NCBI GenBank assembly: GCA_002104905.1
Contig: MCFE01000442.1
Span: forward strand, 10,231-74,230
From: Basidiobolus meristosporus CBS 931.73
Taxonomy: Eukaryota; Fungi; Basidiobolomycota
Length of the DNA stretch: 64,000 nt
Reading direction: 5' to 3'
Numbering within the stretch: the first letter of the stretch is position 1; each line of letters opens with the position of its first letter. Position numbers and translations under genes: made by a program. Under the pieces are notes generated by a model that saw only the letters and a program-made list of their open reading frames with translations, was not told the DNA's origin and did not search any database. Positions 11,884 to 62,663 of this stretch are shown here, one piece after another.

Positions 11884-12556
11884 TGTAGTAAGAGTTTTGG
11901 GGATATTGAAGTGATTGGGAGAACAAGTAGATTATGTGGTTTGCACTTATGATATATTAGCTGTAGAAGTTAACCTTATACTTTTACATGGTATTGGCAT
12001 AGAAAACATGTAGAATATGTCCCAAGTGTTGTAAAAATTTGTAATTCTACCTAAATATTCACCTAACTTAGTCACTTAGATCATTACCTCCAAATCCTAG
12101 AGAATACTGATCAATCTCCTTGTTGGGATTTACTTAGAATATTTACCCAGAACATGAAAATTAGATAAGTTGTCCAAACAGCCCTAAACCTTGCACACAT
12201 GTTCTTGGGATCTTTTTAAACCTATTCTATGCGTTTGTTATGCCAAGGCCATGTAAAAGTATAAATACTACTTTTGCAATCAATAAATCATTAAGTGAAA
12301 ACCACACAATCTACTTGTCCTCCCAAATCACTTCCAGTATCTCCAAGACTCTTACAACACCAAGAACATGTGTGTGGAGTCTGGGGCTGTTTGGACAACT
12401 TTAAGATTTCTAATATTCTGGGCATCTGATATTTGGTGAAAATAGTCTAGGTAATTCCCAACAAGGAATTTGGACAGAATTCTCTAAGATTTGTAGCTAA
12501 TGATCTAAGCAACCCATTTAGGTGAATATTTTGGTGTAATCACAAAACTTACAACA
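11884..12556 (-). mobile_element. Copia solo LTR inserted in an older LTR and itself interrupted by a younger LTR
   Basis: TGTAGTAAGAG...CTTACAACA. Flanks GCCAG/GCCAA form a 4/5 TSD inside a + strand host LTR that starts near 11646 and resumes at 12557. Confidence 0.8.
12027..12359 (+). mobile_element. Copia solo LTR, short subtype (17-nt deletion)
   Basis: TGTTGTAAAAATT...CTCTTACAACA with a perfect 5-bp TSD, CCAAG (12022-12026 and 12360-12364). Confidence 0.95.
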
Positions 12557-13026
12557 GCCAAGACTATGTAAAAGTGGTATTTATAATTTTACACAGTATT
12601 GACAAAAAACCACATCAGATATGCTCAGGAAGGTCTCAAAAACATGTGGACAAAGTTTGTGGCTGCTTAGACAACTAATTGACTTTCATGTTCTGGGTGC
12701 CTGATGTTTTGGAAAAAATATTTCAAGTAAATCATGACAAGTGATTTGATCAGTGTTCTCTATGAATTATGGACTGTAACTTAGGTGATTAATTTAAGGG
12801 AATATTTAGGTGTAATTACAAACCTTACAACACAAGCCATGTTGCATAATTCTTGCTGATGTAAATGTTGTAAGTGTTTTGGACATATTGGAAGTGATTG
12901 GGAGTACAAACAGATTATGCGGTTTTCACTTGATGATTTATTGAATGTAAAAGTAGTATATATTATTATTTAGGCTTTTATCAAAATGCTCCTACTACAT
13001 TTTTCAAAATAATCAAGGATGTATAT

Positions 13027-13230
13027 AATTAGGTGTAAATCCAACTCTTCATGCTAGGACTAAATACATAATGATTAGACATCATTTCATACAGGACGCT
13101 AAATAGATTAACTTAGTTCACTGTCTTTCAGATGAAATGATTGCAGATATGTTCACCAAACCATTAGCTAGAGGCAAACTTGAATATATTAGATCACAGT
13201 TGGGCCTAGCTAATACAAATATTTAGCTGT
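13027..13230 (+). mobile_element. Decayed copia RNase H C-terminal fragment
   Basis: Nucleotide similarity by eye to the end of pol in the full element (CCAACTCTTCATGCTAGGACTAA..GATGAAATGATTGCAGATATGTTCACCAAACCATTAGCTAGA). Confidence 0.8.
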
Positions 13231-13302
13231 ATTTACAAAATTTACATCAGAAGGTACCACCAGAATAGCACTTCAATTCCAGCAAGATTTCATACAAGTT
13301 AC

Positions 13303-13634
13303 TGTTGTAAAAATTCGGAATTCCACCTAAATATTCACCTAACTTAGTCACTTAGATCATTGCCTTCAAATCCTAGAGAATACTGACCAAATTCCTTGTT
13401 GGGATTTACTTAGAATATTTACCCAGAACATGAAGGTTTGATAAGTTGTCCAAACAGCCCCAAACTTTGCACACATGTTCTTGGGACCTTCCTTAACCTA
13501 TTCTACGTGTTTGTTATGCCAAGACCATGTAAAAGTATAAATACTACTTTTACAATCAATAAATCATTAAGTGAAAACCACATAATCTACTTGTCCTCCC
13601 AGTCACTTCCAATATCTCCAAGACTCTTGCAACA
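13303..13634 (+). mobile_element. Copia solo LTR, short subtype (17-nt deletion)
   Basis: TGTTG...CAACA, 332 bp, with a perfect TSD, GTTAC (13298-13302 and 13635-13639). Contains TATAAATA (13536) and AATAAA (~13558). Confidence 0.95.
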
Positions 13635-15018
13635 GTTACAAGATTGAGATCTTTCACAGTGATATAGTAGCTTTGCAAAGTTAGTGGTCTGTTGCCTTTG
13701 TAGAGATCTTAAGAGTTAAAAGTGGTATTCTCCAAATGGTGTTGGTCTTTATCTCTAAATGTAGTGCCCAACTTCAAGTAAATAGCAACTCCTAAGTATT
13801 TAGAAGTATTTTGGATATCCATGGGAAATTTGCTGTATAATGAGGTAAGTGAGGCTCAAAAGTGATCCATAATATTAGAGCAAGTTGAGTAGAGATATTG
13901 TATTTATTCCTTGTGAAAAACAGATAATAGTTATGTATTTGAAAAAACCCAAAGCCCAACAAGGATGCATGCTAAGTATGATATCACGTCTAAAATTCAG
14001 AATATTGGGTGAGAGTTCCACCAGAATTGATATTTAAGTATATATCTAGCACGCCGTACCTCACAAATCTTATTACAAGAAGCCCGTCCGCACTCAAGGA
14101 TTAAATATTTATTCACACCACAACGTTGAGGAAGGACTAATGCAAATATTTGATTGTGAATCAACCACATTTCCTACTACAATATAGCATGGTACACTGA
14201 CCACCAAGCCAGTAATTTATGTGCTCATATGTCTTTGTATGAAAACGAGTGATTAGTATGGCCTTGGAAGTGATTTGACGCGCATTTCTACAATTGCTAC
14301 AAGATCTTTGAAATAATATTGGTATTGACCATGCGCGAAATCTTGGAATCACTAGGAACACTACACATTGTTTGTAACATTACATACCTATTCAGTGTTT
14401 GTAGATATCCGAAGTGCTGGCCCATAAAGCAGCAATTTGACGTGAATTGAAATGGCCTCGTAGAATCGACGTTTAAAAGGATATGTGCAACGTCTAGAGG
14501 CAACACAATCCCAAAACACATTGATTAAATATGAACAAATAATAGTTATACAACAGCTCAAGGCAGATAAACACTTGCTTCCTGTATAATATTCCCACCA
14601 GCAATGACACCAACTGAATAAATAACCCGATGTTGCAGATTAATAACTACACCTTGTTGAAACACGTGTTTTATTTAACTGATTTGACTGTTCAAGAATA
14701 TTCACTAATCGGTTGGAAATTTCCCGATCCTGGAACCATCGTCTTTTAGTCTAGATTGCATAATTTCGTCGTATCATCATTCTGATTCCTTGGTTTGACT
14801 CCTTTATCATCTAAAATCCCATCGAACTGTGTCACATCCTTGTCATTCACGTAACATTTCCCTCTTCCAGCCTGGTTTCAAGTTCTTCATTTCCAAGAAC
14901 ATTGAACATCAAAGTGTATTCTTGCATTTAGATATCGGCTGACTCTTTCAGCTGCTGCATTTTTTCGCACTAGTCCCCTATTCTCCTACATATCCCTTTT
15001 GTGAATATCATCGAGCAC

Positions 15019-17883
<2,865 letters not shown>

Positions 17884-18329
17884 AGCACATTATTTACCCA
17901 CTGCACACATTTACCCCCCCCCCGCACTCGCCTCCGTCATCAGCATGCTTGGTCTAATGGGGACTTCTCGATTTTTGAAACGGCTTCTTTATTGATTTTA
18001 TCTTTTGAATCACCGCGCCTCCCACAGCCTCTGGGACAAGCGACGATGTCTGTGTACATTCAATAAACTATAATGAAAAGTCCGCCTCATTCTGCACGGT
18101 CTAGTCTATCAGCATCAAAGGCCCACCTCATTTACACGGTCTAACCCATCAGCTTTATATCCATCAAGTTAAAGGTAAAGGGTGGTGAAGATTATACACA
18201 AAAGGGACTATGGTCAGGTGCGGGTGCTCTGTAAGGTGGCCATTAGTGTGACGCTTGGGGACATGAGTGATAAAAATATTCGTAATATGTATATATATAT
18301 ATTGATCTATCATTGAATGGAATTTCATA

Positions 18330-19949
18330 TTAATCACAGCAGGCCCGACACGTAAAGACGTCCATGACAGTCGACCAAAAGTCTTTTCTCGGCTCAACAT
18401 TTGGGGGGTTGTGAGGCGGTGGAATATTTGGTGTTTCGTGCTGTCGTGGTGGAGTTTGGATATTTGCGCTGGTATTGTGAGAGTATCCTCGAGGCGTGCG
18501 CGATTCCTTTGTCTAACAAGATTAATTAATGGTGTGTCAAGCATTACGTGAACGCTCAAAGTGTACATACCAAGCCGTGGTCTTGTGATACCCAGTCATA
18601 CATCCCATCATTACGCTGCCCCATTTTCTCCAAAACCTGTTCGAATAGACCCCGGAGGCGTTTGTAGTCGGGTTTATCCTCGAAGCCAAGGGTACGAACA
18701 TAGTTCATATACTGTGCAAACTCCTCTGCATTAAATGAAATGATTTGAGTTGAACGTCATCGGAAACCCACCGACCCAACCGGTTCAATACCTGGAAACC
18801 CGCCACATAGTTCTTTTATGGATGTTGTTTGCTTTTTCTCACCAATCTTCGAGTATTTCTGCTTGGCGTTGGCGGCCTTCAATCCTTGCCACGGAAGTGA
18901 CCCACGAAGGAAGTACATGAACACGTGTCCAAGCGATTCAAGATCATCTCTTCGAGATTGCTCTAAGATGCAACGTTAATGACGGGTTTCGAAATGTCCG
19001 GGAAATAGCGCGTCACTTACCTCTGCCGAGATGTGTATTGATACTCATATAGCGAGCGGTTCCGGTGAGGCTTTTCCGCTCTCTGAATGGGATGTGCTGT
19101 TTGGTTTTGGGGTTGATGTAGTACTTTGCCATTCCAAAGTCAACCATGTAAACCGATGTTTCATGGGAGGAGTTGGGGCGGCCGAGTAAAAAATTATCTG
19201 GTTTGATGTCTCGATAAATAAGCCCATGTTCGTGGACAGACTGAATACGCAAAATCTAAGGTTTCACAGGAGTTAATCCAGGAGAAACATGGTGATACCA
19301 TGGCGTTGCTTCCGTACCATCTGAATAGCCAACATAGCCACTGTCTTGACGCTGAATTTACGATGGGATTTTTCAAACACATCCTCCAGGCTGGGCCCCA
19401 GTATGTCAATCACTAGCACATTGTAGGCGCCCTCTTGGCCAAAGTAGTAGGCAGAAGGTATGCATGCTTGATGGAGGTAAACTAGTTTAATCTGGAGCAC
19501 CGTGAGCAATAAACAACCAATTGACTTACAAACACCACTGAGTATTTTGTAAACTTTATATTCATCCCGGAGTTGAGGGACTGAAGCTTTTCGATTTTCC
19601 TAAGGCTGTGATCAAGGGTAATAACCATCCAGGGGGATGCGGGAAGGAGGCAAGAAAAGTGAGGCATGTTAAGGATACGAATTTGAGTGCGACGGCCTTT
19701 TTTCGGTTGAGATCGGTGCCTGATGTTCAACGTCAAGGGTTGTGAGACGATGAGTATGGGGTTCAGTACAACCTCAGTCACCTACTGGAGGTATACGTCA
19801 AGTGTGGCTATAGGAAGAGAAGTACCTTCAAAAATAACACCAAAACTTCCTTCACCAATTCTACGACCGACACGATATTGATTCCCTACCACACCGGGGA
19901 TCTCTCTGTCATTGGAGGAATCGGGGATGCGCGGGTTTCTAGGAGACAT
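18330..19949 (-). CDS. Casein kinase I, Yck/CK1-gamma type, with C-terminal cysteine cluster (CRACCD*)
   Basis: [65 protein letters not shown] and LPWQGLKA. All introns can be read in frame. Confidence 0.95.
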
Positions 19950-20555
19950 CTACCAACAGAAGTGAACTAAGACGAGGGGAAAAGAAAGAGGACCGAACAC
20001 ACCCAGGCGTCTAATAGTGTATTCAATTTAACCAAGATAAAAAGCTACGAAAGTACCGCGGAATTGGCAATGTATAGGACTATTAAATAATCAGCACTGA
20101 ATCAAAATCAGCAAAGATAAGGGAACTGCACAAACTGATCTAGAAATTGCATTGAAAATAAGTTGCTCTCAGAAGCAACCTAAAAAGGGGATTGCTTCTC
20201 TTTGTTCCTTTTTTGAGGGAGTCGTGCTCCTTGACCTGTCCCCTTTATGTATCCATATGTTAGGTGTACAAAACAGAATTGCTTCCTAGATACAACCCAA
20301 TCAAGTGCGTATTGCTTTTTTGGGATTCTCAATATGGTGCGCGAGTCGATGTCGCGTAGTAAGGACAGTTGGAGGTAAACAACCTGGCGTGGATGTGGTG
20401 TGGATGGGCTGTGAGTATTGGGGGTAAACCAAGTGTGCCAAGTTCCTCTGCACACACATGCAGTCGCTTTATTCCAAGGATCAGTGTTGCATATTATATT
20501 ATATAGATTAGGCGTTTGTTAAGGCGGTGAGCTAGACTACTGAGATTGGTTTCGG

Positions 20556-22353
20556 CTAATCCACAAGATCAGCGTCTTCGATTTCCTTCCTATTCAGATT
20601 CCCATCAACACACCACGCCAGCACGACTCCCGCCACAGTGAACCCAATTAGAATCCAGTTGGCTGCCTTCATCGGATAGCTTTGCTTCTCGTTCTGGAGG
20701 AAATCCATGCCCACGATAAACAGGATCCCAAATATCTGCGCCGCCGAATTTAGCAGCCCGGCCGAGGTGGTCTCGCTGAGCGGATAGTAGAGCTCTCCTG
20801 CGTATTGAAAAAACCCAGATATGATGGCTGTGGTTGAAGGATGTGAGTTGCTATCGGTCAGAACCATTGCTCAATAACCAGGTACCTGATGAGAAGAAGC
20901 CATACGCCAAGCTGCGGTCGAAAGGGGTGGTTAGCAATCGGCCAGTCAAGAGAATAGAACTCGTCCGGCACTCCACCTGGAACCGAACACAAGCGCGAAG
21001 CTGCCCAACTCCACGATCAGATGGAAGCCAAGTAAGGACAGTAGTGTCCCGACAAACAAAAACCTACACATCTCCCTGTATCTGTAGGTTTGATCCAGAT
21101 ACAGTCCACACAGAATACTACTGACGACTCCAGCAATGATGAACCAAAACCCTATCTGTCCTATCGCTGACTTGAAGTGGGCTTATATTAGCTGCAGGCC
21201 TTAGACGTGAGTGTGTGCGTGAGTGGGTGTTCTACTACCTCTGTGTACGTAGGATGCATAGGCAGAATAATCTGAGCCAGCAATGTACTGACGGCATACT
21301 GTCCACCTACAACAATGCCATATGCCATAAATAACAGAATAAAGCTCCATTGACCCAGAAGGATCTTTATCGACTGGATTACTGCATGTGGATTCTCAAG
21401 AACAACGGAACAGCTACCTCTGCATTAGATTTCCCGGTTTTCGCGAGCCTGCAATCGAGACATACCTTGGTGGAACCTTCGGCCTGGAATCGAACGTGAG
21501 GACAACGAATATCAAGATCAGCCCACAGAATAGGAACTGCCGTGAAAACATCATTAGCAAGATCAGTGCTACGACCATAGACCGTGGATACCGATTACTT
21601 GATACAACAGGTATTTTGGGATATCATCGAATGCCGTTCCATCGCGAATAAATACCGGTGAAAGCAGAAAACTGGAATGATCAGGTCGAATTACTAAACG
21701 CTGCTACATGCAAAAATGGTGAGATATAAACCCTAGAGCAACACCAAGATTGTTTGCGGTGACCCCTATAGCGCTAGCTGTGTTCCGTTCATGAGAGCCG
21801 AACCATACACTTGCAAGTCTTGGTGGGATACCTAAAGGGGAGAGAGGTTATGGTTTGTGCAGAGCGTATGCGGCTTGTCAGTTTTACCTAGTATAAATAC
21901 TTGGCCCGCGGCCGCTAAAAACTGTCCAAAAAACAGAACCCAGAAATTGACAGCCCAACCTCCGAAGAAGCGAAACAAAGCACCTAGACAGTTGAGGAAT
22001 GCGCCCACCAAAATCACTTGCCTAAGACCACCACCGTGGCTAACATCAGCAGATTTCCCTAATTCAAACACCCATAAGGAGGGTAAAAAAAGAATCGGGT
22101 ACACCACCAAGTAAATGGTGGACAACGAGTTGATGTAGAACGTGGACGACTGGCCAAAATACTCCATGAATACGCCTTGACAGGGAGCGAACGTTATCCA
22201 CATGGCCGCCGACGAAAAGGACAGGATAGAAAAACCGAATAAAATTATCCAGCGTTTAGGCTCTAGGGCATATTGAGGCCTCTGCCCTTTTAAGAGTGGC
22301 TGTTGTTGGGCATTTTGTACTTGCGATGTTGACTCTACAGCAGCTTCGATCAT
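20556..22353 (-). CDS. Major facilitator superfamily transporter, FLVCR/DIRC2-like
   Basis: Y..PKRWIILFGFSILSFSSAAMWITFAP, FFGQFLAAAGQVFILG and AGELYYPLSETTSAGLLN match FLVCR-family motifs. Multi-exon; internal exons not fully traced. Confidence 0.88.
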
Positions 22354-22582
22354 CAAGTTCTTGGCTTGAGAAATTACAAGGACAAAGAGCCTTGTGAGAC
22401 TTTTACCCCATATATCATCTAAATGTGAACACTCTGCATTTAGACTGCTATTAAGCGTGAATTAAGCAGTAACCACTCAGTATTGAAACTATAGAAGATT
22501 TATTTGGATAAAGAATTACTACTACATTGAATTTTGAAATAGATGATTGTAAAGGTAATCCAGTCTATTTGATTCACTGATC

Positions 22583-23376
22583 CTAATTTGCTTTCTTCGA
22601 TGGGGCATCAGTAACAGCAGCTGTTTGATTATCAGCGGCAGCGGGTGCGGCCTCATTGGTGGGTGCTGCTAAATTGCTGTTTTGATTCAAATATTAAGAT
22701 AAATCCTTCGGATATGATGGCATCATAGCACTTACCCGAATGGGGATTCGACCTTCCAAGGGCGCTGCAAATCGCCCTCAGCGGGCTTGTTGAGAATGTG
22801 AACCTTGAACAACTTGGTCTCACAAGCGCTCTTAAGGGGCAAGATGGATTGAAGGAACAAAGGTTGGATATAGCCCCACTTGTAGTGAATGAAGCCCAGG
22901 ATGGCAACAGAGATGAGGGTTTGTTTGACTTGCTTTTGGAGCTCGCCAAGATCGTAGTCACGAACAGTGGTGGTAATCTCGGTTTGTCTAGAAATCGACG
23001 TTAGTATTGCCACATTGATGAAATTGCAGCTGTATACATACTCTTGAGCCATAGGTTTAGGTTCGGTGTATGTTAATGGAGTGGTATCTATCGTTCAAAC
23101 ACATTAGGGAATTGTCAAAGCAAAAGTGGCTAGATGATCTTACCATTCTTGGCCTTGATGCGAGTCATAATAAAGAAGCTCAGTGCAAGAATGAGGGCGT
23201 TCGAGGTGACATAAGCCATTTGAACATATTGCTTATTGCCTTCATCCTCCAGGTTGAGCTTTCTGGACACTTGTACAAGTACAAGCACCAAACCCATGTT
23301 CAGTAACTAAAAGAAGAATCCATAAGTATCACGCTAGCGGAATTTCAAGGCATCACAAGCATACTTGAGAGTTCAT
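22583..23376 (-). CDS. PHO88: Pho88/Snd3 ER membrane protein
   Basis: MNSQ|LLNM..VQVSRKLNLED..IKAKND..TTVRDYDL..MH/IHYKWGYIQPLFLQSILPLKSA..VHILNKPAEGDLQRPWK. Confidence 0.92.
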
Positions 23377-23942
23377 ATTGGGCAACACGATAGAATGAAC
23401 GTTAAGAAAGAAACGACTCAAAGATACAGGTAATCATCCACTTCAATTTAAAGCAACATCAAATCCTTCTACCATGGAAAAAACCATGGAATCCCTATCG
23501 TGTGGTAAGTTGATTGGAGCTAACCAAAGAATTGTGTAAATGATGCAAATTGTCCCACTAGAATCCAAGATGCTCTCATACAATAAGCATGCTAACGTAT
23601 CATCAATTATTGGACAGAAATATGGCAATTACGCGACACTGTGAAGAGTGGTTGGATGGTCTCCATAGTATCGGCACACAGTGCAATGGAGACTGATATC
23701 ATTACCCATCAGCATTGGAGCATCCAATCATTGTGAGCCTGAAAAAAAAACCCTTTTTTTTCATATTGGGATTCGAAGGAATTGAATAAATTCCCGGAAG
23801 ATGGAATCGATGTCCTTACTACACTCTCCCACCTACTGTGTACGTATTTACTTGCCTGTATGACTTTCGTTGACCAAGTGCTAATCGACTGAACTTCATT
23901 TTAATGAATTAAATGTAGTGAGGACGTCTGTTGGCAATTACC

Positions 23943-24374
23943 ATGTCCGCCGAAAACCAAGAAATCCCCCAAGAAGTCGAAGTCGCCCCTGAGGCCGCTC
24001 CTCGCGGACAAATGTCTGTTGAAGAGGCTCTCCAAGAAGTCCTCAAGAAGGCTTTGGTCCATGATGGCCTTGCCCGCGGTTTGAGAGAGTGTGCCAAGGC
24101 CCTCGACAAGCGTCAAGCCCACTTGTGCGTCCTTGTCGAAACCTGTACCGAGAAGGAGTACATCAGACTCGTTGAGGCTCTCTGCGCTGAGCACAACATC
24201 AACCTCATCAAGGTTTCTGATGCCAAGAAGCTTGGTGAATGGGCCGGTCTTTGCAAGATCGATCGTGAAGGTAGCGCTCGCAAGGTCGTTGGCTGCTCTT
24301 GCGTTGTCGTCAAGGACTACGGAGAGGAATCCGAGGCCTTGAACGTCCTTCTCGAATACTTCAAGTCTCATTAA
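23943..24374 (+). CDS. RPS12: 40S ribosomal protein eS12. CDS has no intron; probable 5'-UTR intron at 23840-23918 and 3'-UTR intron at 24383-24555
   Basis: [72 protein letters not shown]. Confidence 0.98.
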
Positions 24375-24414
24375 ATACTATGGTAAGTAGCTTTGAAATA
24401 TTGAAATCATATTC

Positions 24415-24496
24415 GGCGATGATGATTTTGGTCTCCCTCTTCTGAATCTTGTTGAGGAAAATTTACCAATCCGGAATCATATTATACGTCTGAGCC
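24415..24496 (+). ncRNA. Intronic box C/D snoRNA, SNORD100-like, predicted to guide 18S 2'-O-methylation
   Basis: Terminal stem GGC/GCC, C box ATGATGA (24419), D' box CTGA (24442), C' box TTGAGGA (24452), D box CTGA (24490). The D' guide CTCCCTCTT is complementary to conserved 18S GAGAGGGAG, and TCCGGAATC (24470) to the adjacent GATTCCGGA. It lies inside a GTAAGT..CTAAC..CAG intron. Confidence 0.85.
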
Positions 24497-47760: not shown

Positions 47761-47802
47761 AGTTTATTTTTGAACCATCATCTTCTCCCTGTGTACTTTT
47801 CT

Positions 47803-47826
47803 ACCCTTACCCTTACCCTTACCCTT
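47803..47826. repeat. (ACCCTT)4 hexamer microsatellite in a 3' UTR
   Basis: Four perfect tandem units seen directly. Confidence 0.9.
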
Positions 47827-49638: not shown

Positions 49639-49779
49639 GTTTAGACTTCAACCCACGTTTCTCTTATTTGCCTATTGAGAGGCACACGGACCTTCCATGA
49701 TGCTACACAGGCAGCCTTACCATTATATTTATTATTATAATTCTTAGTGGATTCTAAAATATACATGAAGGACGCTTCT

Positions 49780-51010
49780 TCAACTTCTAGATTGTTGAAG
49801 CTTTGGTCTGGCTTCATCCCAGGGGCCATGGATCTCGCTGTAATAATAAAAAGCAATCGAACATTAGATCGGGTTAGATGGAAGCGAGTCCCGCAAATGC
49901 ACATACTTCTTGTATTTCTGAATCCAAATCAGCCAAAACGGGCACCCGAAAGTGATGAATCCCATGGCTATGATGTAGAAGGTGGCCAGGGCTTTCGAGA
50001 TGAAGTAAAAGAGCCCAGCTGCCGAGCAGAACAGCACGCACGATAGGATGATGTTGGAATGGCTAGAGAGACTCTGAGAAATGGGTTAGCACAATGCTTG
50101 GATCCGCCCTACAGATCGGCTTACCTTGATATGGCGTCTAAAGATCGGGAACAAAGCGAACCATTCTACGGCAAATGACATCAGCCCAAAGACCTCCATA
50201 TTCGATGGTAGACGAGAAGCTAGCAAGACTGACGCGAATATGGCCGCGTTTGTTGATAAAGAGCTGGGAAACCTGCACAATAAGTCATGTCAGTTAGTTC
50301 TGCTCTCGAAGGGCTCACTGGAGAAATTCGGGGACACTTGCTTGATATTGGTTCGGTTTCCGGACCCGTAATCGTGCAAAAGCATATTTACCAAGAACAA
50401 GCAGACCGTTACTGCCCATATCGTGTCACTGCTGGTATCCTTGGTCAGCGTTTTCAAAATTGGCGAGAATCCTAGCAAAGCAACAAACAGAAGTACTGCA
50501 CTCTTGGTGGTCTTCAGCCCTGGGAAGGACGCATCTATTTAGCGATACTTCATCAATACCCGAGATACACACTTGATATTTACTTTTGTGCTGGTAAAGC
50601 GGGTCGGTTTTGCTAATGCTATAGTCCCAGTATATATACCCAACTCCCGTAGATAAAGTACCGCTCCAGATCAACGTTTGTGCTGATAATACTTTATGAT
50701 ATAGCCAAATAAACACCGCGACAAAGATAATGATACTGCTGATGTGTTGCGTTATCACCGTAGATTCACGAACCACTGTCCAGTAATCGTAAGATCGCAC
50801 ATTGGCTGCATCGATGGTTGATTAGAGGGTGCCAATCTGTATGGTCTGCAGAAAAATATGTACCGTTCTTCTGCATCTCTTCAAGAAAAGAACTGTCAAC
50901 ATAATTGTCGGGGTACTCTTGCTTGACATACAAAAGCTTTTGCCATTTCTGTTTGGGTGTAACCGGAAGTTGTTGACCCCTGGCTCTTTGTTTTATCTAA
51001 AGTCGTGGAT
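49780..51010 (-). CDS. GPI2: GPI-GlcNAc transferase subunit PIG-C/Gpi2; apparent -1 frameshift at 50910-50912; start codon not located
   Basis: WQKLLYVKQEY(P)DNYVD..FL, LGFSPILKTLTKDTSSDTIWA, SLSTNAAIFASVLLASRL and EIHGPWDEARP. Confidence 0.9.
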
Positions 51011-51558
51011 GAAGAGGTAAGCCCGTTTCAGTATTGAATGTCGACAAGCCTATTTCAAAGATTCGGTATATACCTTAGTTGGGTCCCTTTTGTAGGGTGG
51101 ATTCAAGTTGGTGTCAAGGAAATGGTGAGACTAGGGCTAAGTTCGCGTTCACGCAAGAAGGTGGTAATTCCTATTTACCTTTCGACTTGAAACACACCGC
51201 AAAATGACTCTTCTTGAATATACTGCTTTCCGTCATTAGGGGAATACGTCAAGGTCATTTATATGGTAGATGTGGGCTAGAAGAAAGGCTAACGAGCTCT
51301 TCCCAGGAGTTATAAAATACAATAATAATTGTGGAGTGTCCACTGGGTAACTTATTGTTGGGCGAAATATATATTCTGGAATTAAGGTTTCCGGAATCAG
51401 CTAGCTTGATGCTCATGGCGGTCCGAAAAATTTTGTTTTTGAATATGATTGCCTGTATCAGATTTATTTGACGAGCTGAGCCTGATTCTTCCAACTCTTA
51501 GAGCGTGTGGTCTTAAGTGTCTCAACTACGACCTATATACCAATTCGAAGCTACTGAA

Positions 51559-52363
51559 ATGAACGTTTTACTCAGAACTCAAGCTCCTCGTGCCTTCTCT
51601 TTGGCCAAAGCAGCCCAAGGTATGTCTCACCAGCCGCTATAAATCCCAGTTTTGCCCACTTTTGTAACCGTTGATACTATCCATCTAGCCAATTCACGAG
51701 TCTCTTCCGCTCTTTTCCACACAACCACCTCTCGCTGGGCTCAGGAGGATGGAAAAACCATTTACGGAAAGGATTTGACCCCCAGCTCACCCCAACTCAA
51801 AAAGTTCAGCGACAGAATCAGCGTCAAGTTGGACGACAGCGAACTCTTGTTGCAATCCATGACCCACAAGTCTTTTGATCACGCCAGAGTCCCCACTAAC
51901 GAGCGTCTGGAATTTGTTGGTACGTACTTTCCGGACTAGAAAGTAACAACCATGCCTGTTCTCACCCGCCAGTTTTGTATAGGTGAAAAGGTGCTGAACA
52001 TGTATGCCGCTCAACACATTTTTGAGAAGTTCGCCGATATCGATGCCCAGCAATACGAGGATCTCTTGGAGCAATACATCGGCAAGGATGCGCTTGCCCA
52101 ATTCGGTCTTGATAATGGAATCGAGGAAGTTATGAGATGGAAGCCTGCATCCAACCAGAAGGACAGCAAGATTGGCTTGAACACCGTATCCGCCAAGGCC
52201 GTGAGTGCCTTGGTTGGGGCCGTGTTCCATGCGCAGGTAAGGGGAATTTTTGTGGAGCCCATCCCAACCCACACTAACCCTTGGTCCATCCCAGGGTGCC
52301 AAAAACGCCAAAGAAATCATCCAAAAGCATTTATTAGCCAAGAACGTAGAGCTATCTCAATAG
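51559..52363 (+). CDS. MRPL15: Mitochondrial ribosomal protein mL57 (RNase III-like fold)
   Basis: N-terminal transit-like peptide, then QSMTHKSFDH..PTNERLEFVG and MRWKP..AVSALVGAVFHAQ|GAKNAKEII. Confidence 0.8.
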
Positions 52364-52700
52364 ATAATTCTCGCACATTTCCCACATCTCTACATTTCTC
52401 GACTTGGCCATCTCTAATTGCATTTTATAAACTGAAAAATAAATTTCCTTGTCATATGAACCTGGACCAATCAGTGGTGGTGGAAATTGCTAGTGCCTGC
52501 TCTAACTATTCTCTGAGCACCGGCATGGAATATTTACGTACCAGGAAATTTGGTTTGCCGTGTCCCTCATTGGTGGAAATTGCTTTGCTGGTAGGAAATG
52601 CTCAATAGAATTTGGCCTCAATAAAACCCACCTGGAAACTGGTCTTTTCGTTTCCCTATCTTGTTCAATTGCTTCGGTGTCCGCCTTAGCTTAATATAGT

Positions 52701-53782
52701 ATGTCAACTAGACCAGCAGCTCCTTCATCGCTCGTTGAGCGCCTCAAGCCATTGGCCCTCGTAAGTGACCCATCGTGTATGTTTGTTCGAGTGCAGGGTT
52801 GATTTACCGTGTCTTTAGTCTCCTAGATTTGCTTGGTGGGTTGGTCACTGCATCATCACTCTCGGCTCCTTCTTCTACTTCTTCAACAAGCTCTTTGGAT
52901 CCGCCGCTTCTGCCCAGAGCTGGTACTATAGAGTGTATGTCGGTGTACTGCTCAGTTACGGTATCACCGTATGGAAGACTTACGGTGTAGGTTTTCTACA
53001 GTAACGCCTTAGTTTCGTAGTCCTTTCACTCAACCCGCTTCCCTTTCGTTAGATGCCCCAATTCAACTCTGCCTTCTTGCAGCGTATCTTCATGGACGAC
53101 AACGTCCACTATCTGCTGATGGGTCTCCTGTGGTACGTCTCTCCCCCACTCTTCGGTAAGTGCTTCAGCACCTGAGCTCGCATAACGCTTTCGCATAACA
53201 CGTGATTCTTCTCAGTTACCATTATTCCCTTCGCCGTCTATTCTCTCTTCCATGTGATCGATTTCGCTCGTGCTACCCTCCTCCCAGCCATCTTCCCTGA
53301 CTTGAACTCTGCCACCCGCTCCCCTGGAGCCACCCAAGCTGCCAACATCGCTAAGGGTATCAAGCGCTTCAAGGACACCTACTATGATGCTGGTATGAAG
53401 AGTGTCGCCAAAGTTGAGGTTATTGGAGTAATGGGACTTCAATTGCTCGGTGCTATCACGTCAGTATCAATCCATGAACTGTGTCGAACCCCTTGTCCAA
53501 CCAACATGGCTTATTAACCCGCATCCAACCTCTTCTAGATTCCAATTGTCCCCCCTCGGTACCCTCTTCTACGCCAACTTCCTCCGCATCCGCTACCACC
53601 TTTCCCCTCACATCCGTCAAACCTTTACCGAGGTTCGCACCTTCTTCGATAACCACCTTGTCTCCCCCAACGCCAACCCTAAGATCCCCGCCATCGTCGG
53701 CAAGGGTTACGTCATGATCCGGGATGGCATTATCTCCTACGGACAGTCCATCGTCCGTCAACCCACTGCTGGTGCTCAATAA
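52701..53782 (+). CDS. POM33: TMEM33/Pom33/Per33 family ER and nuclear-pore membrane protein
   Basis: FAWWVGH, YRVY..LSYGITV, MDDNVHYLLM, IIPFAVYSLFHVI and LFYANFLRIRY. Confidence 0.88.
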
Positions 53783-54734
53783 GCCACCCCATTCAGAGTA
53801 ATATATAAACCAACCAACCGCCCAAAATTTTTTCTTGTGAATGCCGGTCTCCCAAGTTGATCTCTTACCACGGAGAATGGATTGAGGGACGGGATGGTGG
53901 GACTATTGCTGGTGGTGGGTAACGTTCCCAATCACTGGTCACTACATCAATTTCCATTTCAACCTCGGATGACTACCAATCGGGCACCGTCTGGTTTCCA
54001 TCCTGAATAAACTCAGAGTTCCTTTCGAAAGATTCCCCAGGGATTTGATGGCTGCGCGTGCATATGTGGTTGTATTTTCTGGCTCCCGGGTCGGCAGAAT
54101 GTGTAGCGATAGTGAAGGGATTTGTTTTGCAGGGTGCGTGCGTGTGCAGTGTTGCGAGTTACCACTACTAACCACAATGCGGCATTGCATAAATTCAATT
54201 CGAAGGGACCCGTTCCCAGATCAAATCTTCAAGTGATCCAGATGCCTGTTTGAGTTGGTTGCGGAAAACCAATTGAACTTCGAGTTGCGTTCTTTTCAAT
54301 GGTCTTACCGCCGGAATGAATCTTGGTCGGAGTTTATCAAGCCAATTGATGCCTTACCACATATCTGCACATGATTGTACCAATCGCTGCCAATTTCAGA
54401 CACCAATGTTATGTTGTCTATTTTGTGACAAGACTTTGAGGAGTGTTAAAAACGACCAGGGAATAAGATGATTTGCTGCATATTCATTTGTTTAGTTGCG
54501 TTCAAATAAATCTTCAATATAAGTTTACAATACAAATAATTCATTAATAGTTTATGAAGAGCTTGATAATACTGGGAACAAGAATGCTACAAGGGTGGAC
54601 TAGGACAGGGTGCCCAAAGCTTTAGGTTCACTAGATGAATTTGAAATTTTGGAACCTTACTGAGCTCAATAACTGGTCAATTGGCAAATGTTTGCTATTA
54701 GAGTCATGGAGATAAAGGAAGTAATTAGGATAGC

Positions 54735-55051
54735 TGTTGTAAGAGTTTTGAAGATATTGGAAGTGATTGGGAGGACAAGTAGATTATATGGATTTAACTT
54801 GATAATTTATTGAATGTAAGAGGAGTATTTATACCTTTACATGGTCTTGGCATAACAAGCACGTAAATAGGATTAGGAAGGTCCCAAGAACATGTGTGCA
54901 AAGTTTGGGGCTGTTTGGACAACTTTGAGAATTTTCATGTTATGGGTGTCTGATATTTTGGTGAAAATGCTCCAAGTAAATCCCAACAAGGAATTTAGTC
55001 AGTATTCTCCAGAGGTTGTAGGTAATGATCTAAGTGACTAAGTTAGGTGAA
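54735..55051 (-). mobile_element. Copia LTR, truncated, fused head-to-head to an RT fragment
   Basis: TGTTGTAAGAG.. runs to GGAAATACAAAT, lacks its terminal ~10 nt, and abuts + strand RT sequence directly. Confidence 0.9.
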
Positions 55052-56366
55052 TATTTAGGTGGAAATACAAATAGAGACTAAATCCAGCCTATCTAAGGAG
55101 TTCAAGATGTCCAATCTAGGAGAACTCAGTTACTACTTAGGGATTAAGTTCTCCATAGACAGAAGTACCCAGACTATCACCCTAAGTCAGTCCAAGTATA
55201 TTCAAGATATACTAAAGAAGTACCAAATGGAAGACTGTAAACCAGCAGCTACCCCAATGGAGACAAACCTTAACTTGGTCAAAGCTCAACCAAATCAAGA
55301 GAGCTTGGTGCCATCTGAAAGCCCTGACTTTCCTTATCAATCTATGGTTGGCAGTCTGATGTATATCATGCTTGGAACATGTCCAGATATCTCATAGTCA
55401 GTGGGAGTTGTCAGCCAACATAATCAGAACTATGAATCTGATCATATTGCAGCAGTTAAGCGGATTTTTAGATACCTAAAAGGAACTGCTGATATCTGCT
55501 TAAGATACACTTATAAGGATTCAGAACAAGATCTTGTGGGATACTTTGATGCTGATTGGGGACAAAATTTGGAAGACAGAAGATCCACCACAGGATACAC
55601 CTTTCTTTACTGTAAAGGAGCAATTTCATGGAATTCAAGAAAGCAACCAGCTGTAGCACTTTCCACCACAGAGGCAGAGTATATGGCAGCATGTGAAGCT
55701 ACAAAAGAAGCAATGTGGTTAAGAAAATTTTTTACAGATTTAGGCCTATGTCAAAAAACACCTATTACTTGATTTCAAGATAATCAAGGATGTAAATAAT
55801 TAGGTAGAAATCCAACTTTTCATGCTAGAACTAAGCACATAGATATTAGACATCATTTCATATGTGAAGCTATAGAGAATAACTTAGTTAGCTTAGTTTA
55901 CTGTCCTACAGATGAAATGATTGCAGACATATTTACCAAACCATTAGCTAGAGACAAGTTTGAATATCTTAGGTCAAAATTAGGACTAGTCAGTATGAAC
56001 ATTTAGCTGAGTCGGAGTGTTGTAAAAATTTGTATTTCCACCTAAATACTCATCTAACTTAGCCACTTAGATCATTACCTTCCAATCCTAGAGAATACTG
56101 ACCAAATTCCTTGTTGGGATTTACTTAGAATATCTTCACCAAAATACCAGGTACCCAGAACATGAGAATTCCCAAAGTTGTCCAAACAGCCCCAAATTTT
56201 GCACACATGTTCTTGGGACCTTATTTAACTTATTCTACGTGTTTGTAATGCCAAGACTAGGTAAAAGTGTAAATACTACTTTTACATTCAATAAATCATT
56301 AAGTGAAAACCACATAATCTACTTGTTCTCTCAATCACTTCCAATATCTTCAAGACTCTTACAACA
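55052..56366 (+). mobile_element. 3' part of a copia copy: RT end, RNase H, polypurine tract and 3' LTR (56018-56366)
   Basis: KEFKMSNLGELSYYLGI..YQSMVGSLMY..DADWG..EAEY, with in-frame stops. GAGTCGGAG precedes TGTTG..CAACA. Confidence 0.93.
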
Positions 56367-56653
56367 CCTCTATGGCTGGTTGCTTTCTTGAATTCTACAA
56401 AATTGGCTCCTTTGCAGTAAAGAAAGGTGTATCCAGTCGTAAATCTTCTGTCTTATAAACTTTGTCCCCAATCAGCATCAGAGTATCCCATAAGATCCTG
56501 TTCTGAGCTCTTATAGGTGTACCTAAAGCAGATATTAGCTATTTCTTTTAGGTATCTAAGAATCTGCTCAACTGCTGTAATAGGAGAAAATCCATAGTTC
56601 TGAATATGCTAGCTGACAACTCCCACTGAATATGAGATATATGGGCATGATCC
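56367..56653 (-). mobile_element. Older, decayed copia RT/RNase H fragment
   Basis: Aligns by eye to 57760-58035 with many substitutions. Confidence 0.8.
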
Positions 56654-57043
56654 TGTTAAAAAGTTTGTAATTCCACTTTGATATTCACCTAACTCAGTCA
56701 CTTAGATCAATACCTACAAATCTTGTAGAATACTGACCAAGTTTCTTGCTGGGACTTATTTAGAATATTTTCACCAAACATTAGATACACAGCACATAAA
56801 AATTCCCAAACTTGTCCAAACAGCCCCAAACTTTGCACACATGCTCTTGTGAGCTTTCTAAGCCTACTCTATGCATCAGCTATACCAAAATTATGTAAAT
56901 GTATAGGCACTACTTGTACATTCAGTAAATCATTGAATGAGAAGCATATCATCTACTTGTTCTCCCAATCACTTCCAAAAACTCCATGACTCTTACAGCA
57001 GATTGTGAGCCCTAAGCTGTCACTCTTGGCAATATCTAATACT
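56654..57043 (+). mobile_element. Old copia 5' LTR (56654-57000), decayed PBS and start of gag, interrupted by the full-length copy
   Basis: The LTR is followed by GATTGTGAGCCCTAAGCTGTCACTC, a decayed GGTTATGGGCCCCAAGCTGTCACTC. The gag sequence resumes at 61725. Confidence 0.85.
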
Positions 57044-57404
57044 TGTTGTTAGAGTCTTGGAGATATTGGAAGTGATTGGGAGAACAAGTAAATTATGTGG
57101 TTTTCACTTAACAATTTATTGATTGCAAAAGTAGTATTTATACTTTTACCTGGTCTTGGCATAACAAACATGTAGAATAGGTTAAGGAAGGTCCCAAGAA
57201 CATGTGTGAAAACGTTTGGGGCTGTTTGGACAACTTTGAGAATTTTCATGTTCTGAGTACCTGGTATTTTGGTGAAAATATTCTAAGTAAATCCCAACAA
57301 GGAATTTGGTCAGTATTTTCTAGGATTTGAAGGTAATGATCTAAGTGACTAAGTTAGGTGAATATTTAGGTGGAAATACGAATTTTTGCAACACTCCCAC
57401 TCAG

Positions 57405-60400
57405 CTAAATGCTCATACTGACTAGTCCTAGTTTTGACCTAAGATATTCAAACTTGTCTCTAGCTAATGGTTTGGTAAATATGTCTGCAATCATTTCATC
57501 TGTAGGACAGTAAACTAAGCTAACTAAGTTATTCTCTATAGCTTCACGTATGAAATGATGTCTAATATCTATGTGCTTGGTTCTAGCATGAAAAGTTGGA
57601 TTTCTACCTAATTGTATACATCCTTGATTATCTTGAAATAAAGTAATAGGCGTTTTTTGACATAGGCCTAAATCTGTAAAGAGCTTTCTTAACCACATTG
57701 CTTCTTTTGTAGCTTCACAGGCTGCCATATACTCTGCCTCTGTAGTAGAAAGTGCTACAGTTGGTTGCTTTCTTAAATTCCATGAAATTGCTCCTTTACA
57801 GTAAAGAAAGGTGTATCCTGTAGTGGATCTTCTGTCTTCCATATTTTGTCCCCAATCAGCATCAGAGTATCCCACAAGATCCTGTTCTGAATCCTTACAA
57901 GTGTATCTTAAGCAGATATCAGCAGTTCCTTTTAGGTATCTAAAAATCTGCTTAACTGCTGCAATATGATCAGATCCATAGTTCTGATTATGTTGGCTGA
58001 CAACTCCCACTGAATATGAGATATCTGGACGTGTTCCAAGCATGATATACATCAGACTGCCGACCATAGATTGATAAGGAAAGTCAGGGCTTTCAGATGG
58101 CACCAAGCTCTCTTGATTTGGTTGAGTTTTGACCAAGTTAAGGTTTGTCTCCATTGGGGTAGCTGCCGGTTTACAGTCTTCCATTTTGTACTTCTTTAGT
58201 ATATCTTGAATATACTTGGATTGGCTTAGGGTAATAGTCTGGGTACTTCTGTCTATGGAGAACTTAATCCCTAAGTAGTAACTAAGTTCTCCTAAATCAG
58301 ACATCTTGAACTCCTTAGATAGGCTGAATTTAGTCTCTTCCATTATTTCTAGGTTATTGGCGGCTATAATAAGATCATCCACATATAGAGCTAATAGAAC
58401 TGGATTTGCTCTATCTGGCTTATAGTATATACTATAGCATTACTTCTTTTGAAACCCAAGGATTCCAAATAAGAATCTATCTTGCAATTCCAGGCTCTCG
58501 GTGATTGTTTGAGACCATATAGTGACTTTTTAAGCTTGCAGACCAAATGGGAGTTATCTTGGTCAGCAAACCCATCAGGCTGGTCCATATACACGTCCTC
58601 ATCAAGTTCTCCATTCAAAAATGCAGTTTTTACATCCATTTGATGAACAAAAAACTTATATTTGGCTGCAATAGCCAATATTAATCTGATGGAATTAAAT
58701 TTGGCTACCGGTGCAAAGGTCTCAGTATAGTCAAGTCCTTTTGTTTGAGAGTATCCTTTGGCTACAAGTCTTGCTTTGTATCTTTCAATTGTACCATCAG
58801 CCTTGTATTTTGTCTTGAAGACCCATCTGCATCCAATTGATTTTTGGTTGATTGGTAATTTGACTAAGTCCCAAGTTTGATTTTCCATCAGGGCCTGATA
58901 TTCCTCAGTCATTGCAGATCTCCAAAACTTTGTCTGAGGGCTATTTAGGGCCTCTTTTACAGTCTGGGGCTCATCAATATGGACTGAATAGGCATAGGCT
59001 AAGTTTGTACCCTCATTGATATAGTAATTTGGGCTATTTCTTGTCCAATTTGATCTCCGGGCATTTGATACTGGAATGATCACTTCTGGGATATTCCAGG
59101 GCACTGATTCTGGCTGAACCATGGTTGTAGAGTCCTCTGGAGTGAAAAAATTTTCATTGTTTTGCTCTGATTCAATCCTGACAATTGGTGGACTTGAGAT
59201 CAAATTTTCGTCATCATCTGATGTCATTTTTTATGAAAATTTTGAATTTTCATCAAACAACACATCCCTGGACTTGATAAGCTTCTTTGCTTTGGTATTG
59301 TAGAGTCTGTATGCCTTACTCTCATTACAGTAGCCCAAAAATATGCATTTTACACTTTTTGGCTCAAATTTTGACTGATTTCCGGCCAGTTTTTTAGCAT
59401 ATGCTGTACACCCAAATATTCTTAGATGTTCTGCACTTGGTCTGTATCCATGCCATGCTTCAAATGGAGTAGAATCACAAAGTATTCTGTTATAACTCCT
59501 ATTTTTAAGATATACAGCAGTGGCAACTGATTCCGCCCAAAAATCATAGGATAATTTTTGATCATGGATCATAGATCTTGCCATATCAATTATTGATCTG
59601 TTAGCTCGTTCTGCTACTCCATTTTGCTGTGGGGAGTATGGTACAGTAGTCTCTTGCTTTATCCCATGAATTTTGCAGAAGTGGATGAAGAGTTTTGAGG
59701 TATATTCTCCACCATTGTCAGAGCGTATTTTCTTGATTTTTTCACCAGTTTCTCTCTCCAGCATGGCTTTGAACTCCCTGAACTTAGACAGAGCTTCTTC
59801 CTTTCTCTCCATGAAGTAGACCCATGTATATCTTGTATAATCATCAATCAAAGTGATTAAATACTTCATCCTGCCTAAGGATAAAATTTGCATAGGTCCA
59901 CACAGATCTGAGTGAATTAGATCTAATTTTTTCTTAGTTTTGATTAACCCAGAGCTCTTGAATGGTTGTCTGGCTTGTTTCCCATATATGCAGGCTTCAC
60001 AGTGCTCCAAATTAGCTGGGGGATCAATTTTTACTCCAGAAATTAGCTGATCTTTGATCATTTTGCGCGAATAATCAAAATTGATGTGCCCAAATCTCCT
60101 GTGCCAAAGCATTGGTGTTTCTTCATTTAAGGTACTTATATTGGCTTCCAGATATGATGGAATATAAGTCAACTTGTATAGATTCTGATCTCTGATGCCT
60201 AAAGCAATATGGGCACCATTTTGATTAGTGATCCTGCATCCACAATTGTCAAAACTGAAACTGAGTCCTTCTGCTGTGGCCTTGCTTACAGAGAGTAGGT
60301 TCTTGGCTATTTCTGGTACATAGAGTACTTCTTTAAAGGTCAGTGTATGGCTTCCTTCACTGCTTCTAATGTTTACTTGGATAGTTCCTTCTCCCACTGC

Positions 60401-61371
60401 ATCAAGTGTTCTATAGTCACCCATGAAAACCTTCGTAATTGGAATTTCTTGATATTGGGTAAAAAGTTCTTTTTGGTGTGTAAAGTGTTGAGAAGCTCCA
60501 GAGTCAATATACCACGTCTGAGAATCCTTGTTTGTGGTCATATTTAGTGCAGATATGAATAGTCTATCTTCAGTTGTTGCAGCATTTCCATATTCAGGCT
60601 TCTTTTGCTGATAATCTCTCTTTTTGAAACACCGGTCTGATGTGTGTCCTTTCCTTTTGCAGTAGTTGCAAAATAGGTTGCTGTTGCCTTTGTAGGGTCT
60701 TGGGTACCTCCTTTGTTGGTTATCATTGCTTATTAAAGCATTTTCTTCTTCCTTCTTATTGGCGCTTGATTTTCTTAATTCTTCATCCAGGAGCCTTCCA
60801 TATACGTAATTTAAGGTCAAATCTTCAGTTCTGGACTCTAGGGCTGATACAAGGCCCTGAAACTTGTCTGTCAGGCTATTCAGGATGGTAACTATAACAT
60901 CCTCATCAGTAGTTGGTTTGCCCACAGATTCCATCTCATCTACCAGCAGGTAATTCTGTTAATTAGATTTTTCATTTCTTCTCCTGGCAGCATCTTTGTA
61001 GTAAAGAATTTTCGTCTCAGATACATTTTCTTAGCAGCTGAACATGACTGGTGGGTGTCCGCTAATGCTTTCCAGGCATTCTTTGCCGTTTTTGCTCTTG
61101 AGCATTGAATTAGTAATTTGTCCTTGACATTAAGGCAAATGCAGTTAAAGGCACTTTGTTCTTTCTTCTGGTACTTTAAGGCTTCCTCTCCCACGTTTTT
61201 AGGAGGGCATTCTTCTCCCATGACAATATCCCAAAGGCCTCTTTCTTGTAGCAGCATCTTCATCTTCACCTTCCACACTTGGTAGTTAGATCCATCCAAC
61301 TTTTCAGCAGAGGGAAAAATTCCAGTAATACCAGTAGTAGACATTGCAGAGAGTGACAGCTTGGGGCCCAT
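57405..61371 (-). pseudogene. Copia gag-pol with three lesions: 1-nt deletion ~60950, CAA to TAA at 59231-59233, and a 3n+1 deletion at 58435/58436
   Basis: LDGSNYQVWK (gag), CNYCKRKGHTSDRC (zinc knuckle), WYIDSGASQH (PR), LWHRRFGH, HSDLCGP..IRSDNGGEY..PQQNGVAERANR (IN), QMDVKTAFLNG..SLYGLKQSPRAW..YVDD (RT) and YSDADW..KHIDIRHHFIRE (RH). Confidence 0.95.
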
Positions 61372-61375
61372 AACC
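61364..61375 (-). promoter_or_regulatory. Primer-binding site GGTTATGGGCCC (copia/Ty5 type, internal half of initiator tRNA-Met); overlaps the gag ATG
   Basis: Directly abuts the CAACA end of the 5' LTR and matches the PBS known from Drosophila copia and Ty5-like elements. Confidence 0.85.
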
Positions 61376-61724
61376 TGTTGTAAGAGTCTTGGAGATATTG
61401 GAAGTGATTGGGAGAACAAGTAGATTATGTGGTTTTCACTTAATGATTTATTGATTGCAAAAGTAGTATTTATACTTTTACCTGGTCTTGGCATTGCAAA
61501 CATGTAGAATAGGTTAAGGAAGGTCCCAAGAACATATGTGCAAAGTTTGGGGCTGTTTGGACAACTTTGAGAATTTTCATGTTCTGGGTACCTGGTATTT
61601 TGGTGAAAATATTCTAAGTAAATCCCAACAAGGAATTTGGTCAGTATTTTCTAGGATTTGAAGGTAATGATCTAAGTGACTAAGTTAGGTGAATATTTAG
61701 GTAGAAATACAAATTTTTGCAACA

Positions 61725-62663
61725 CTACTACTAATACTGGAATTTTTTCCTCAGCTGAAAAGTTGGATGGATATATCTAGCAAGTGTGCAAGGTGAAGAT
61801 GAAGATGCAGCTATAAAAAGGTGTTGTAAAGATTGGGATCTCCACCTAAATACTTACCTAGCTTAGTTGCTTAGATCATTTTCTCCAAATCCTAGAGAAT
61901 ACTGACCAAACTTCTTGTTGAGATTTACTTGGAATTTTTTTTACCAAAATATCAGGTACCCCAAAACATGAAAATTAGATCAGTTGTCCAAACAGCCTCA
62001 ACTTTGCACACATGCTCTTAGTGTTGTAAGAGTCTTGGAGATATTGGAAGTGATTGGGAGAACAAGTAGATTATGTGGTTTTCACTTAATGATTTATTGA
62101 ATATAAAAGTAGTATTTATACTTTTACATGGTCTTGGCATTGCAAACACGTAGAATAGGTTAAGAAAGATCCCAAGAACATATGTGCAAAGTTTGGGGCT
62201 GTTTGGACAACTTTGAGAATTTTCATGTTCTGGGTACCTGGCATTTTGGTGAAAATATTCAAAATAAATCCCAACAAGGAATTTGGTCAGTATTCTCTAG
62301 GATTTGAAGGTGATGATCTAAGTGACTAAGTTAGGTGAATATTTAGGTGGAAATACAAATTTTTACAACACTTAGGACCTTCCCAAACCTATTATATATG
62401 TTTGGTATGCTAAGACAATGCAAAAGTATAAACTACTTTTACATTAAATAAATCTTTAAGTGAAAATCACATAATCTACTTGTCCTCCCAATCACTTCCA
62501 ATATCTCCAAGACTCTTACAACAGGCTATGTGCCCCAAGCTGCTACTCTCTGCAATGTCTACTAACTGCTATTACTGGAACTTTTTTTTTTGCTGAACAG
62601 TTGGATGGATCCTAACTACCAAGTGTGGAAGGTGAAGACAAAGATGCTGCTACAAGAAGAGGC
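61725..62663 (+). mobile_element. Gag stub, then an LTR (61822-62523, interrupted), decayed PBS and a second gag stub
   Basis: Both stubs align to the first ~138 nt after the LTR of the full element and stop at the AGAGG of gag. Confidence 0.85.
62022..62370 (-). mobile_element. Copia solo LTR (349-bp subtype) inserted in another LTR
   Basis: TGTTG..CAACA with a perfect TSD, CTTAG (62017-62021 and 62371-62375). Confidence 0.96.

Follow-up and report, generated by a model that had tools for sequence, protein, structure and literature searches.

Self-nesting of a Ty1/copia family in Basidiobolus meristosporus, with a probable bias toward its own promoter and leader and one LTR site used twice

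Introduction

A few yeast and amoeba retrotransposons are known to use safe havens and direct their integration to RNA polymerase III (Pol III) genes, silent chromatin or promoter-bound factors; to our knowledge, no such system has been described in early-diverging fungi. Here, we examine a very abundant Ty1/copia family of one such fungus, Basidiobolus meristosporus CBS 931.73, in the final 64 kb of contig MCFE01000442.1 (assembly GCA_002104905.1). This stretch is referred to as the window, and window positions equal record positions minus 10,230. The family has 349-bp long terminal repeats (LTRs; TGTTG...CAACA) and 5-bp target site duplications (TSDs), and two of its insertions lie at the same five bases of its own LTR. 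By analogy, the closest mechanistic model would be Tf1 of Schizosaccharomyces pombe, which integrates in promoter regions with near single-nucleotide precision, under the guidance of Sap1, a protein that binds DNA (review, PMC7175516). Sap1 also binds inside and beside Tf LTRs, so that old LTRs draw new copies (PMC7175516). Tf1, however, is a Ty3/gypsy element whose main targets are host Pol II promoters, whereas the present element is of the copia type and every target seen belongs to its own family.

Other described systems share parts of this behavior. Nested LTR retrotransposons of plants include autoinsertions, and their nesting is non-random along the host element, with palindromes weakly preferred (Jedlicka et al. 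2019, PMC6911290). The plant elements prefer the 3' untranslated region and seldom hit LTRs, whereas the present family favors the promoter region of its LTR and the 250 nt that follow the 5' LTR; moreover, exact reuse of one 5-bp site is not described for plant autoinsertions (PMC6911290). Ty1, Ty3 and the Dictyostelium TRE and DGLT-A elements likewise form stacks of solo LTRs nested at one locus, but in their case a Pol III gene anchors the stack, and the 64-kb window has none. Ty5 targeting depends on a hexapeptide in the integrase C-terminus, which directs the element to silent chromatin (PMC7459421). The present family resembles Ty5 in being copia-type and, by sequence only, in carrying a similar peptide (LISSPP) in its integrase tail, but differs in that Ty5 is not known to reuse fixed bases in its own LTR. 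Among the matches listed for literature mentioning both Basidiobolus and retrotransposons, neither word appeared in the titles.

If the family does target its own promoter and leader, this would be a simple route to very high copy number in a gene-dense genome that spares the host, and it would also account for assembly contigs that end in nests. The thousands of natural events in the family make the question answerable genome-wide, and, should the preference hold, the small target zone would provide a handle on the guiding factor in an early-diverging fungus.

Results and Discussion

Two independent insertions at the same five bases of the LTR

Positions within the element are given on the 5' LTR of a full-length copy (window 61376-61724, minus strand), which is a single copy and not an element consensus. 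The first of the two insertions, ins1 (12027-12359, plus strand), is a solo LTR of 333 nt from a subfamily with an 18-nt deletion; it matches LTR nt 1-349 and has TG..CA ends. It is flanked by perfect CCAAG TSDs at 12022-12026 and 12360-12364, which correspond to nt 199-195 of the older, minus-strand LTR that it splits (host1, 11884-12556). The two parts of host1 are 12556-12360 (nt 1-199) and 12026-11884 (nt 195-349, with a 10-nt deletion). The second, ins2 (62022-62370, minus strand), is a complete solo LTR of 349 nt that shares 96% identity with the full-length copy's 5' LTR. Its TSDs, CTTAG at 62017-62021 and 62371-62375, are also perfect and equal nt 195-199 of host2 (61822-62523, plus strand), an older LTR that serves as the 5' LTR of an element designated E2 and is followed by a primer-binding site (PBS) and gag start at 62524-62663. 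Both targets are nt 195-199 of the reference LTR (CTTGG), with the host2 version, CTTAG, in both TSD copies, and each insert is inverted relative to its own host. The TSDs and complete ends are those of integrase-type insertion, followed in both cases by solo-LTR formation. The coordinates, TSDs, shared LTR bases and subtypes given in a preliminary description of this DNA were all reproduced.

These are two independent events, as that description had proposed, and not one duplicated composite. Position and relative orientation are equal at both sites, and on the contig one composite mirrors the other, as might be expected if a single ancestral LTR-in-LTR composite had later been copied by segmental duplication or by propagation of the composite LTR. 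A duplicated composite should give equal divergence of hosts and inserts, yet identity is 78% between the hosts and 91% between the inserts, which argues for independence. The 18-nt deletion of ins1 also occurs in another solo LTR (13303-13634, designated c13303) and is missing from ins2, which is instead close to the full-length copy. A maximum-likelihood tree of 18 LTRs pairs neither the hosts nor the inserts as sisters: ins2 pairs with an LTR on another contig (L003c, described below), ins1 falls in a group with c13303 and host2, and host1 lies separately. The hosts have longer terminal branches (0.14 and 0.11) than the inserts (0.046 and 0.024). Finally, the host-specific base is present in both TSD copies at each site. 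Common descent of the two composites is very improbable.

Both TSD copies of ins2 carry an A because the CTTGG-to-CTTAG change in host2 predates the arrival of ins2. Hypermutation resembling repeat-induced point mutation was considered for this parallel G-to-A and rejected: differences between family copies in Logan contigs are chiefly transitions of both kinds, with no such signature, and the ages of hosts and inserts suffice.

Insertions concentrate in the LTR and the adjoining leader

Family-into-family insertions were mapped in the window and in five further loci of GCA_002104905.1 (92 kb), which were reached via paralogues of the RGS gene of the window. This 156-kb sample yielded 12 events, a small number with partly decayed junctions, and 10 of the 12 lie in an LTR or no more than ~250 nt past the 5' LTR. 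Six are LTR-in-LTR events. Besides ins1 and ins2, these are LTR Y in LTR X at ~nt 55 (decayed), host1 in LTR A at nt 233-237 (TSDs GCCAG/GCCAA), and A in Y at ~nt 250 (one junction), all opposite to their hosts, as well as c54735, which lies in the same orientation as a 42-nt older LTR end at nt 308-312 (one junction). The insertion of host1 in A is the third event of the preliminary description, at 11884, and is real; as also stated there, the sites lie upstream of the LTR TATA box TATAAATA, at distances of ~55 and ~17 nt.

Four events fall just past a 5' LTR. The full-length copy entered an element designated E1 at element nt ~388 (opposite; ATACT/CTACT), L003c lies at element nt 421-425 of its host (same orientation; AAAAG), E2 entered E1 at element nt 479-483 (same orientation; one junction) and L007b lies at element nt 577-612 (opposite). 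The remaining two events are elsewhere: L007a at element nt ~975 (opposite) and c13303 in the 3' region of a decayed element, Z (same orientation; GTTAC). No common motif is evident among the precise targets CTTGG, CTTAG, GCCAA, ATACT, AAAAG and GTTAC. Overall, eight insertions are opposite to their hosts and four in the same orientation, which is not a significant bias (p = 0.39); the hits in U3 are opposite in five of five cases. In L007, at 3121, an antisense 5' LTR breaks off at LTR nt ~183, where unrelated DNA adjoins it; the break lies 12 nt away from the 195-199 site, and that site is intact in this LTR.

The regional bias is clear when target length is taken into account. In the sample, LTRs account for 34% of family DNA and the first 250 nt past a 5' LTR for 6.6%, with internal sequence elsewhere accounting for 59%, so the LTR and leader together make up 41% of the target and received 10 of the 12 events (p = 0.003). 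Among the non-LTR events, four of six are in the first 250 nt, which is 10% of internal DNA (p = 0.0013), and five of the six LTR hits fall within the 118-nt zone from nt 195 to 312 (p = 0.019). The family has inserted into its own DNA, and into its LTR and leader beyond what target length predicts. A strictly site-specific element would show a large majority of events at one position, and nt 195-199 holds two of 12. These numbers speak far more strongly for a regional preference than for one fixed site, and we consider self-nesting with a bias toward promoter and leader to be probably real. The earlier claim of self-targeting stands as regards this preference for the family's own LTR and leader; its single fixed target is not supported, with 10 of the 12 events elsewhere.

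The distribution of the family across the window points the same way. All 17 LTR pieces are inside two nests, one spanning 11.5-13.7 kb and the other starting at 54.7 kb and reaching the contig end, with none isolated; these nests hold every copy of the LTR family in the window. Copia-family DNA makes up ~18% of the window, and all insertions except the founders sit in it.

A proposed zone of preferred integration

The reading that we favor, although we hold it with no more than even confidence, is that this copia family is biased toward a zone of its own copies that contains local hot spots, and that the bias arises from target choice by the integrase. The family builds its nests by repeated integration into its own older copies. 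The preferred zone would begin ~60 nt upstream of the TATA box in the LTR and extend ~250 nt beyond the 5' LTR, with hot spots inside it. The position nt 195-199, in the arm of an inverted repeat, was used twice independently, each time by an insert opposite to its host, and the ins1 and ins2 elements later collapsed to solo LTRs via LTR-LTR recombination. Local DNA structure, nucleosome arrangement or a bound protein may guide the integrase, and selection acting after insertion would then not be the source of the bias. We infer that target choice is behind the clustering because dead host copies give selection no reason to prefer the leader over the coding region.

The main competitor, less probable but still a serious candidate, combines chance with selection: integration would be near-random, only insertions into dead copies would survive, and a same-site pair would arise by chance among thousands of copies and then be picked out. 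The middle of the window is gene-dense (FKS1, a HECT ligase, the RGS protein and others), and in such a region selection alone can restrict surviving insertions to old copies. The family is also huge; in the Logan contigs of run X1, 146,044 of 1.76 million match it. What this account leaves unexplained is the position of the events, since dead hosts should show no bias toward LTR and leader of the kind seen in 10 of 12 events, nor a preference for the leader over the remaining internal sequence. The agreement of the two same-site events in orientation as well as position is also unexpected.

Several observations, in addition to the effect of gene density, weigh against zone-biased target choice and in part favor chance. 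Just two events share nt 195-199 and ten other nested events are at other sites, and none of the seven LTRs sampled outside the window has a further hit there. For one exact coincidence among six LTR-in-LTR events, p = 0.043 (0.022 with orientation); restricting hits to the 118-nt zone gives 0.08 (0.04 with orientation). These values, 0.02-0.08 in all, are nominal and uncorrected for the pair having been picked from about 1,700 windows. The target lengths behind the enrichment tests are those of today and not those that each insertion met. Layers X, Y, B and C, the older ones, are 64-77% identical to the reference LTR, so junction precision is only ~5 nt, and several nested events rest on one visible junction.

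The last of these points comes from joints in Logan contigs. These contigs, which came from the source sample (X1, X2), a further sample and a relative, were aligned to window 57394-61724 (4,331 letters), and the best 15 of 2,412 joints were considered; some joints are uncounted, and the set gives no distribution. Within these 15, no joint links an LTR end to nt 195-199. The top inverted LTR-LTR joints instead connect the LTR 3' end (61376) to 61413 and 61432, that is, to nt 312 and 293. The nt 312 joint coincides with the window junction at nt 308-312, although nested insertion and fold-back look alike in such joints. This is mild evidence against nt 195-199 as the dominant genomic target; it does not bear on the zone preference. 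Both joints are just downstream of the TATA box and of AATAAA (LTR nt 273-278) and could reflect recurrent nesting or fold-back products that mark R ends. Direct LTR-LTR tandem joints (61724 to 61376) are present too.

Local DNA features and the question of a tether

The reference LTR contains a 15-nt inverted repeat (nt 132-146 and 190-204; 61521-61593, minus strand), and the nt 195-199 target is within its 3' arm. The arms are 87% complementary and separated by a 43-nt spacer. As single-stranded DNA, this region is predicted to fold at -10.9 kcal/mol, better than shuffled sequence (z = -2.4), consistent with the zone-biased reading. A hot spot set by DNA structure is plausible because plant LTR retrotransposons weakly prefer palindromic targets and autoinsert (PMC6911290). 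The TATA box (LTR nt 252-259) itself lies within a palindrome with 11-nt arms.

A tether bound at the promoter is possible, by reasoning from described systems. In its strongest form, a self-homing LTR retrotransposon, a protein encoded by the host or the element would bind the U3 inverted repeat and dock the integrase, giving base-precise, orientation-fixed homing into intact LTRs of the family. Each hit would destroy its site and leave only the newcomer to be hit, so that stacks would grow like Russian dolls and dead copies would serve as safe havens. The nest at 11.5-13.7 kb is a stack with each newer LTR inside the preceding one (X, Y, A, host1, ins1; p ~0.04 if all layers were equally available). 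This speaks for the zone-biased reading, as the pattern expected if each hit ruins its target and leaves only the newcomer intact. We regard self-homing as unlikely, and a strictly site-specific, tether-driven system as a minority possibility.

Comparison with chromatin and Pol III targeting

A further alternative, about as doubtful as self-homing, is targeting of the Ty5 type, in which the integrase tail would bind a heterochromatin protein, new copies would thereby be led to silenced nests of transposons, and nucleosomes positioned by the LTR would expose the same bases on different copies. LISSPP is encoded in the integrase tail of the full-length copy (59183-59200, minus strand) and again in a second copy at 63.2-64 kb, and it resembles the Sir4-binding hexapeptide of Ty5, which we take to be LDSSPP. 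That all LTRs of the window are within nests would also fit. Nevertheless, a six-residue match in a tail rich in Ser and Pro can arise by chance, and the peptide is absent from the older copy at L003; no 10-bp or nucleosome-length periodicity is obvious in where the insertions lie; and Sir4 is, as far as we know, restricted to budding yeasts.

Pol III-directed integration of the Ty1, Ty3 or TRE5-A type was considered and rejected. No tRNA gene and no Rfam family was found across the 64-kb window, and targeting of the Ty1/Ty3 type fails to explain the nests because there is no Pol III gene in it.

The copia element

The full-length copy (57044-61724, minus strand) encodes gag, protease, integrase, reverse transcriptase and RNase H, with three in-frame breaks, and its LTRs are 96.8% identical. 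It is inserted in E1. Domains follow one another on the minus strand from 61503 to 57405 as DUF4219 and Retrotran_gag_2; Pol_BBD, gag_pre-integrs, rve and SH3_retrovirus; and RVT_2. The order gag, protease, integrase, reverse transcriptase, RNase H is that of copia elements. The LTRs are direct repeats with TG..CA ends and 5-bp TSDs, the latter perfect at ins1, ins2, c13303 and L003c. At the position of the PBS, directly 3' of the 5' LTR (61358-61375, minus strand), is GGTTATGGGCCCCAAGC, and directly 5' of the 3' LTR, at the position of the purine tract, is GAGTGGGAG. The Ty5 PBS is complementary to the anticodon arm of the initiator tRNA. The same may hold for GGTTATGGGCCCCAAGC, which seems complementary to the anticodon arm of initiator tRNA-Met; this would mean half-tRNA priming as in copia and Ty5.

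Close relatives of the family's transposon proteins from the B. meristosporus genome were absent in protein collections; the best matches, 81% and 73% identical, were on short ENA contigs. A metagenome scan with a conserved LTR 16-mer gave at least 119 matches, all of them due to chance, and a profile search found no real LTR among them.

Other loci

The five further loci of GCA_002104905.1 contain seven family LTRs, in L003 and L007 only, and three of the nested events. Loci with RGS paralogues from other assemblies or a metagenome had no LTR of the copia family. In a second Basidiobolus assembly (GCA_040143965.1, JASJQH010007138.1), the order FKS1 - RNA14 - RGS - LITAF is conserved with the window, and no family LTR was found within the 17 kb examined. 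Searches from other window genes returned no further loci: a 941-aa open reading frame (ORF) used as a query for paralogues gave no matches, no record was found for a SUZ-domain ORF, and no sister copies were found in the 90% clusters of FKS1 and RGS.

Architecture of the nests

The nests sit in repeat-rich sequence at a contig end, but misassembly is an unlikely source of complete LTRs with flanking TSDs. In the first nest, LTR A (11647-11883, plus strand; nt 1-237) is the host of host1, with TSDs GCCAG at 11879-11883 and GCCAA at 12557-12561. It adjoins a very decayed fragment of LTR Y (11556-11648, minus strand; ~nt 342 to 250), in which A was apparently inserted at ~nt 250. LTR B (12566-12832, minus strand; nt 270 to 2) lies head-to-head with the stub of A at the TATA palindrome. 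The solo LTR c13303 (plus strand; TSD GTTAC), the nearest relative of ins1, is 3' of the pol end of element Z (12968-13302).

LTR A contains a ~50-nt inversion (window 11752-11808; LTR nt ~112-158) between the short inverted repeats ACTTAGAAT and ATTCTAAGT, because of which a profile search matched 11752-11808 on both strands. The segment inverted in A is flanked by an inverted repeat at nt 106-121 and 146-161, the second in the LTR besides that at nt 132-146 and 190-204. Four LTR fragments of the nest have a breakpoint at the TATA palindrome, ATGTAAAAGTA-TAAATA-CTACTTTTACAT (LTR nt 243-272): where A meets B head-to-head (12557-12600), at the end of Y (11640-11650) and at the end of C (12955-12965).

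In the second nest, 54693-55072 (minus strand) comprises c54735 (54735-55072; nt 349 to 11) and the older 42-nt LTR end (54693-54734; nt 349 to 308), whose nested junction at nt 308-312 is one-sided. Further along, E1 (56653-57043, plus strand) consists of an old LTR, c56659, with PBS and gag start; beyond the full-length insert it resumes at 61725-61821, after which host2/E2 interrupts it at element nt 483. Across 56596-57043, the 3' end of an internal region leads into c56659, and a PBS and gag start come after it; c56659 is therefore the shared LTR of two tandem elements. E1 and E2 are both broken after element nt 483 (...AAGAGG|), at 61821/61822 and 62663/62664, a second same-position coincidence in this nest. 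At the break in E1 the adjoining sequence is the 5' LTR of E2, and at the break in E2 it is antisense internal sequence (element nt 3590), not an LTR end.

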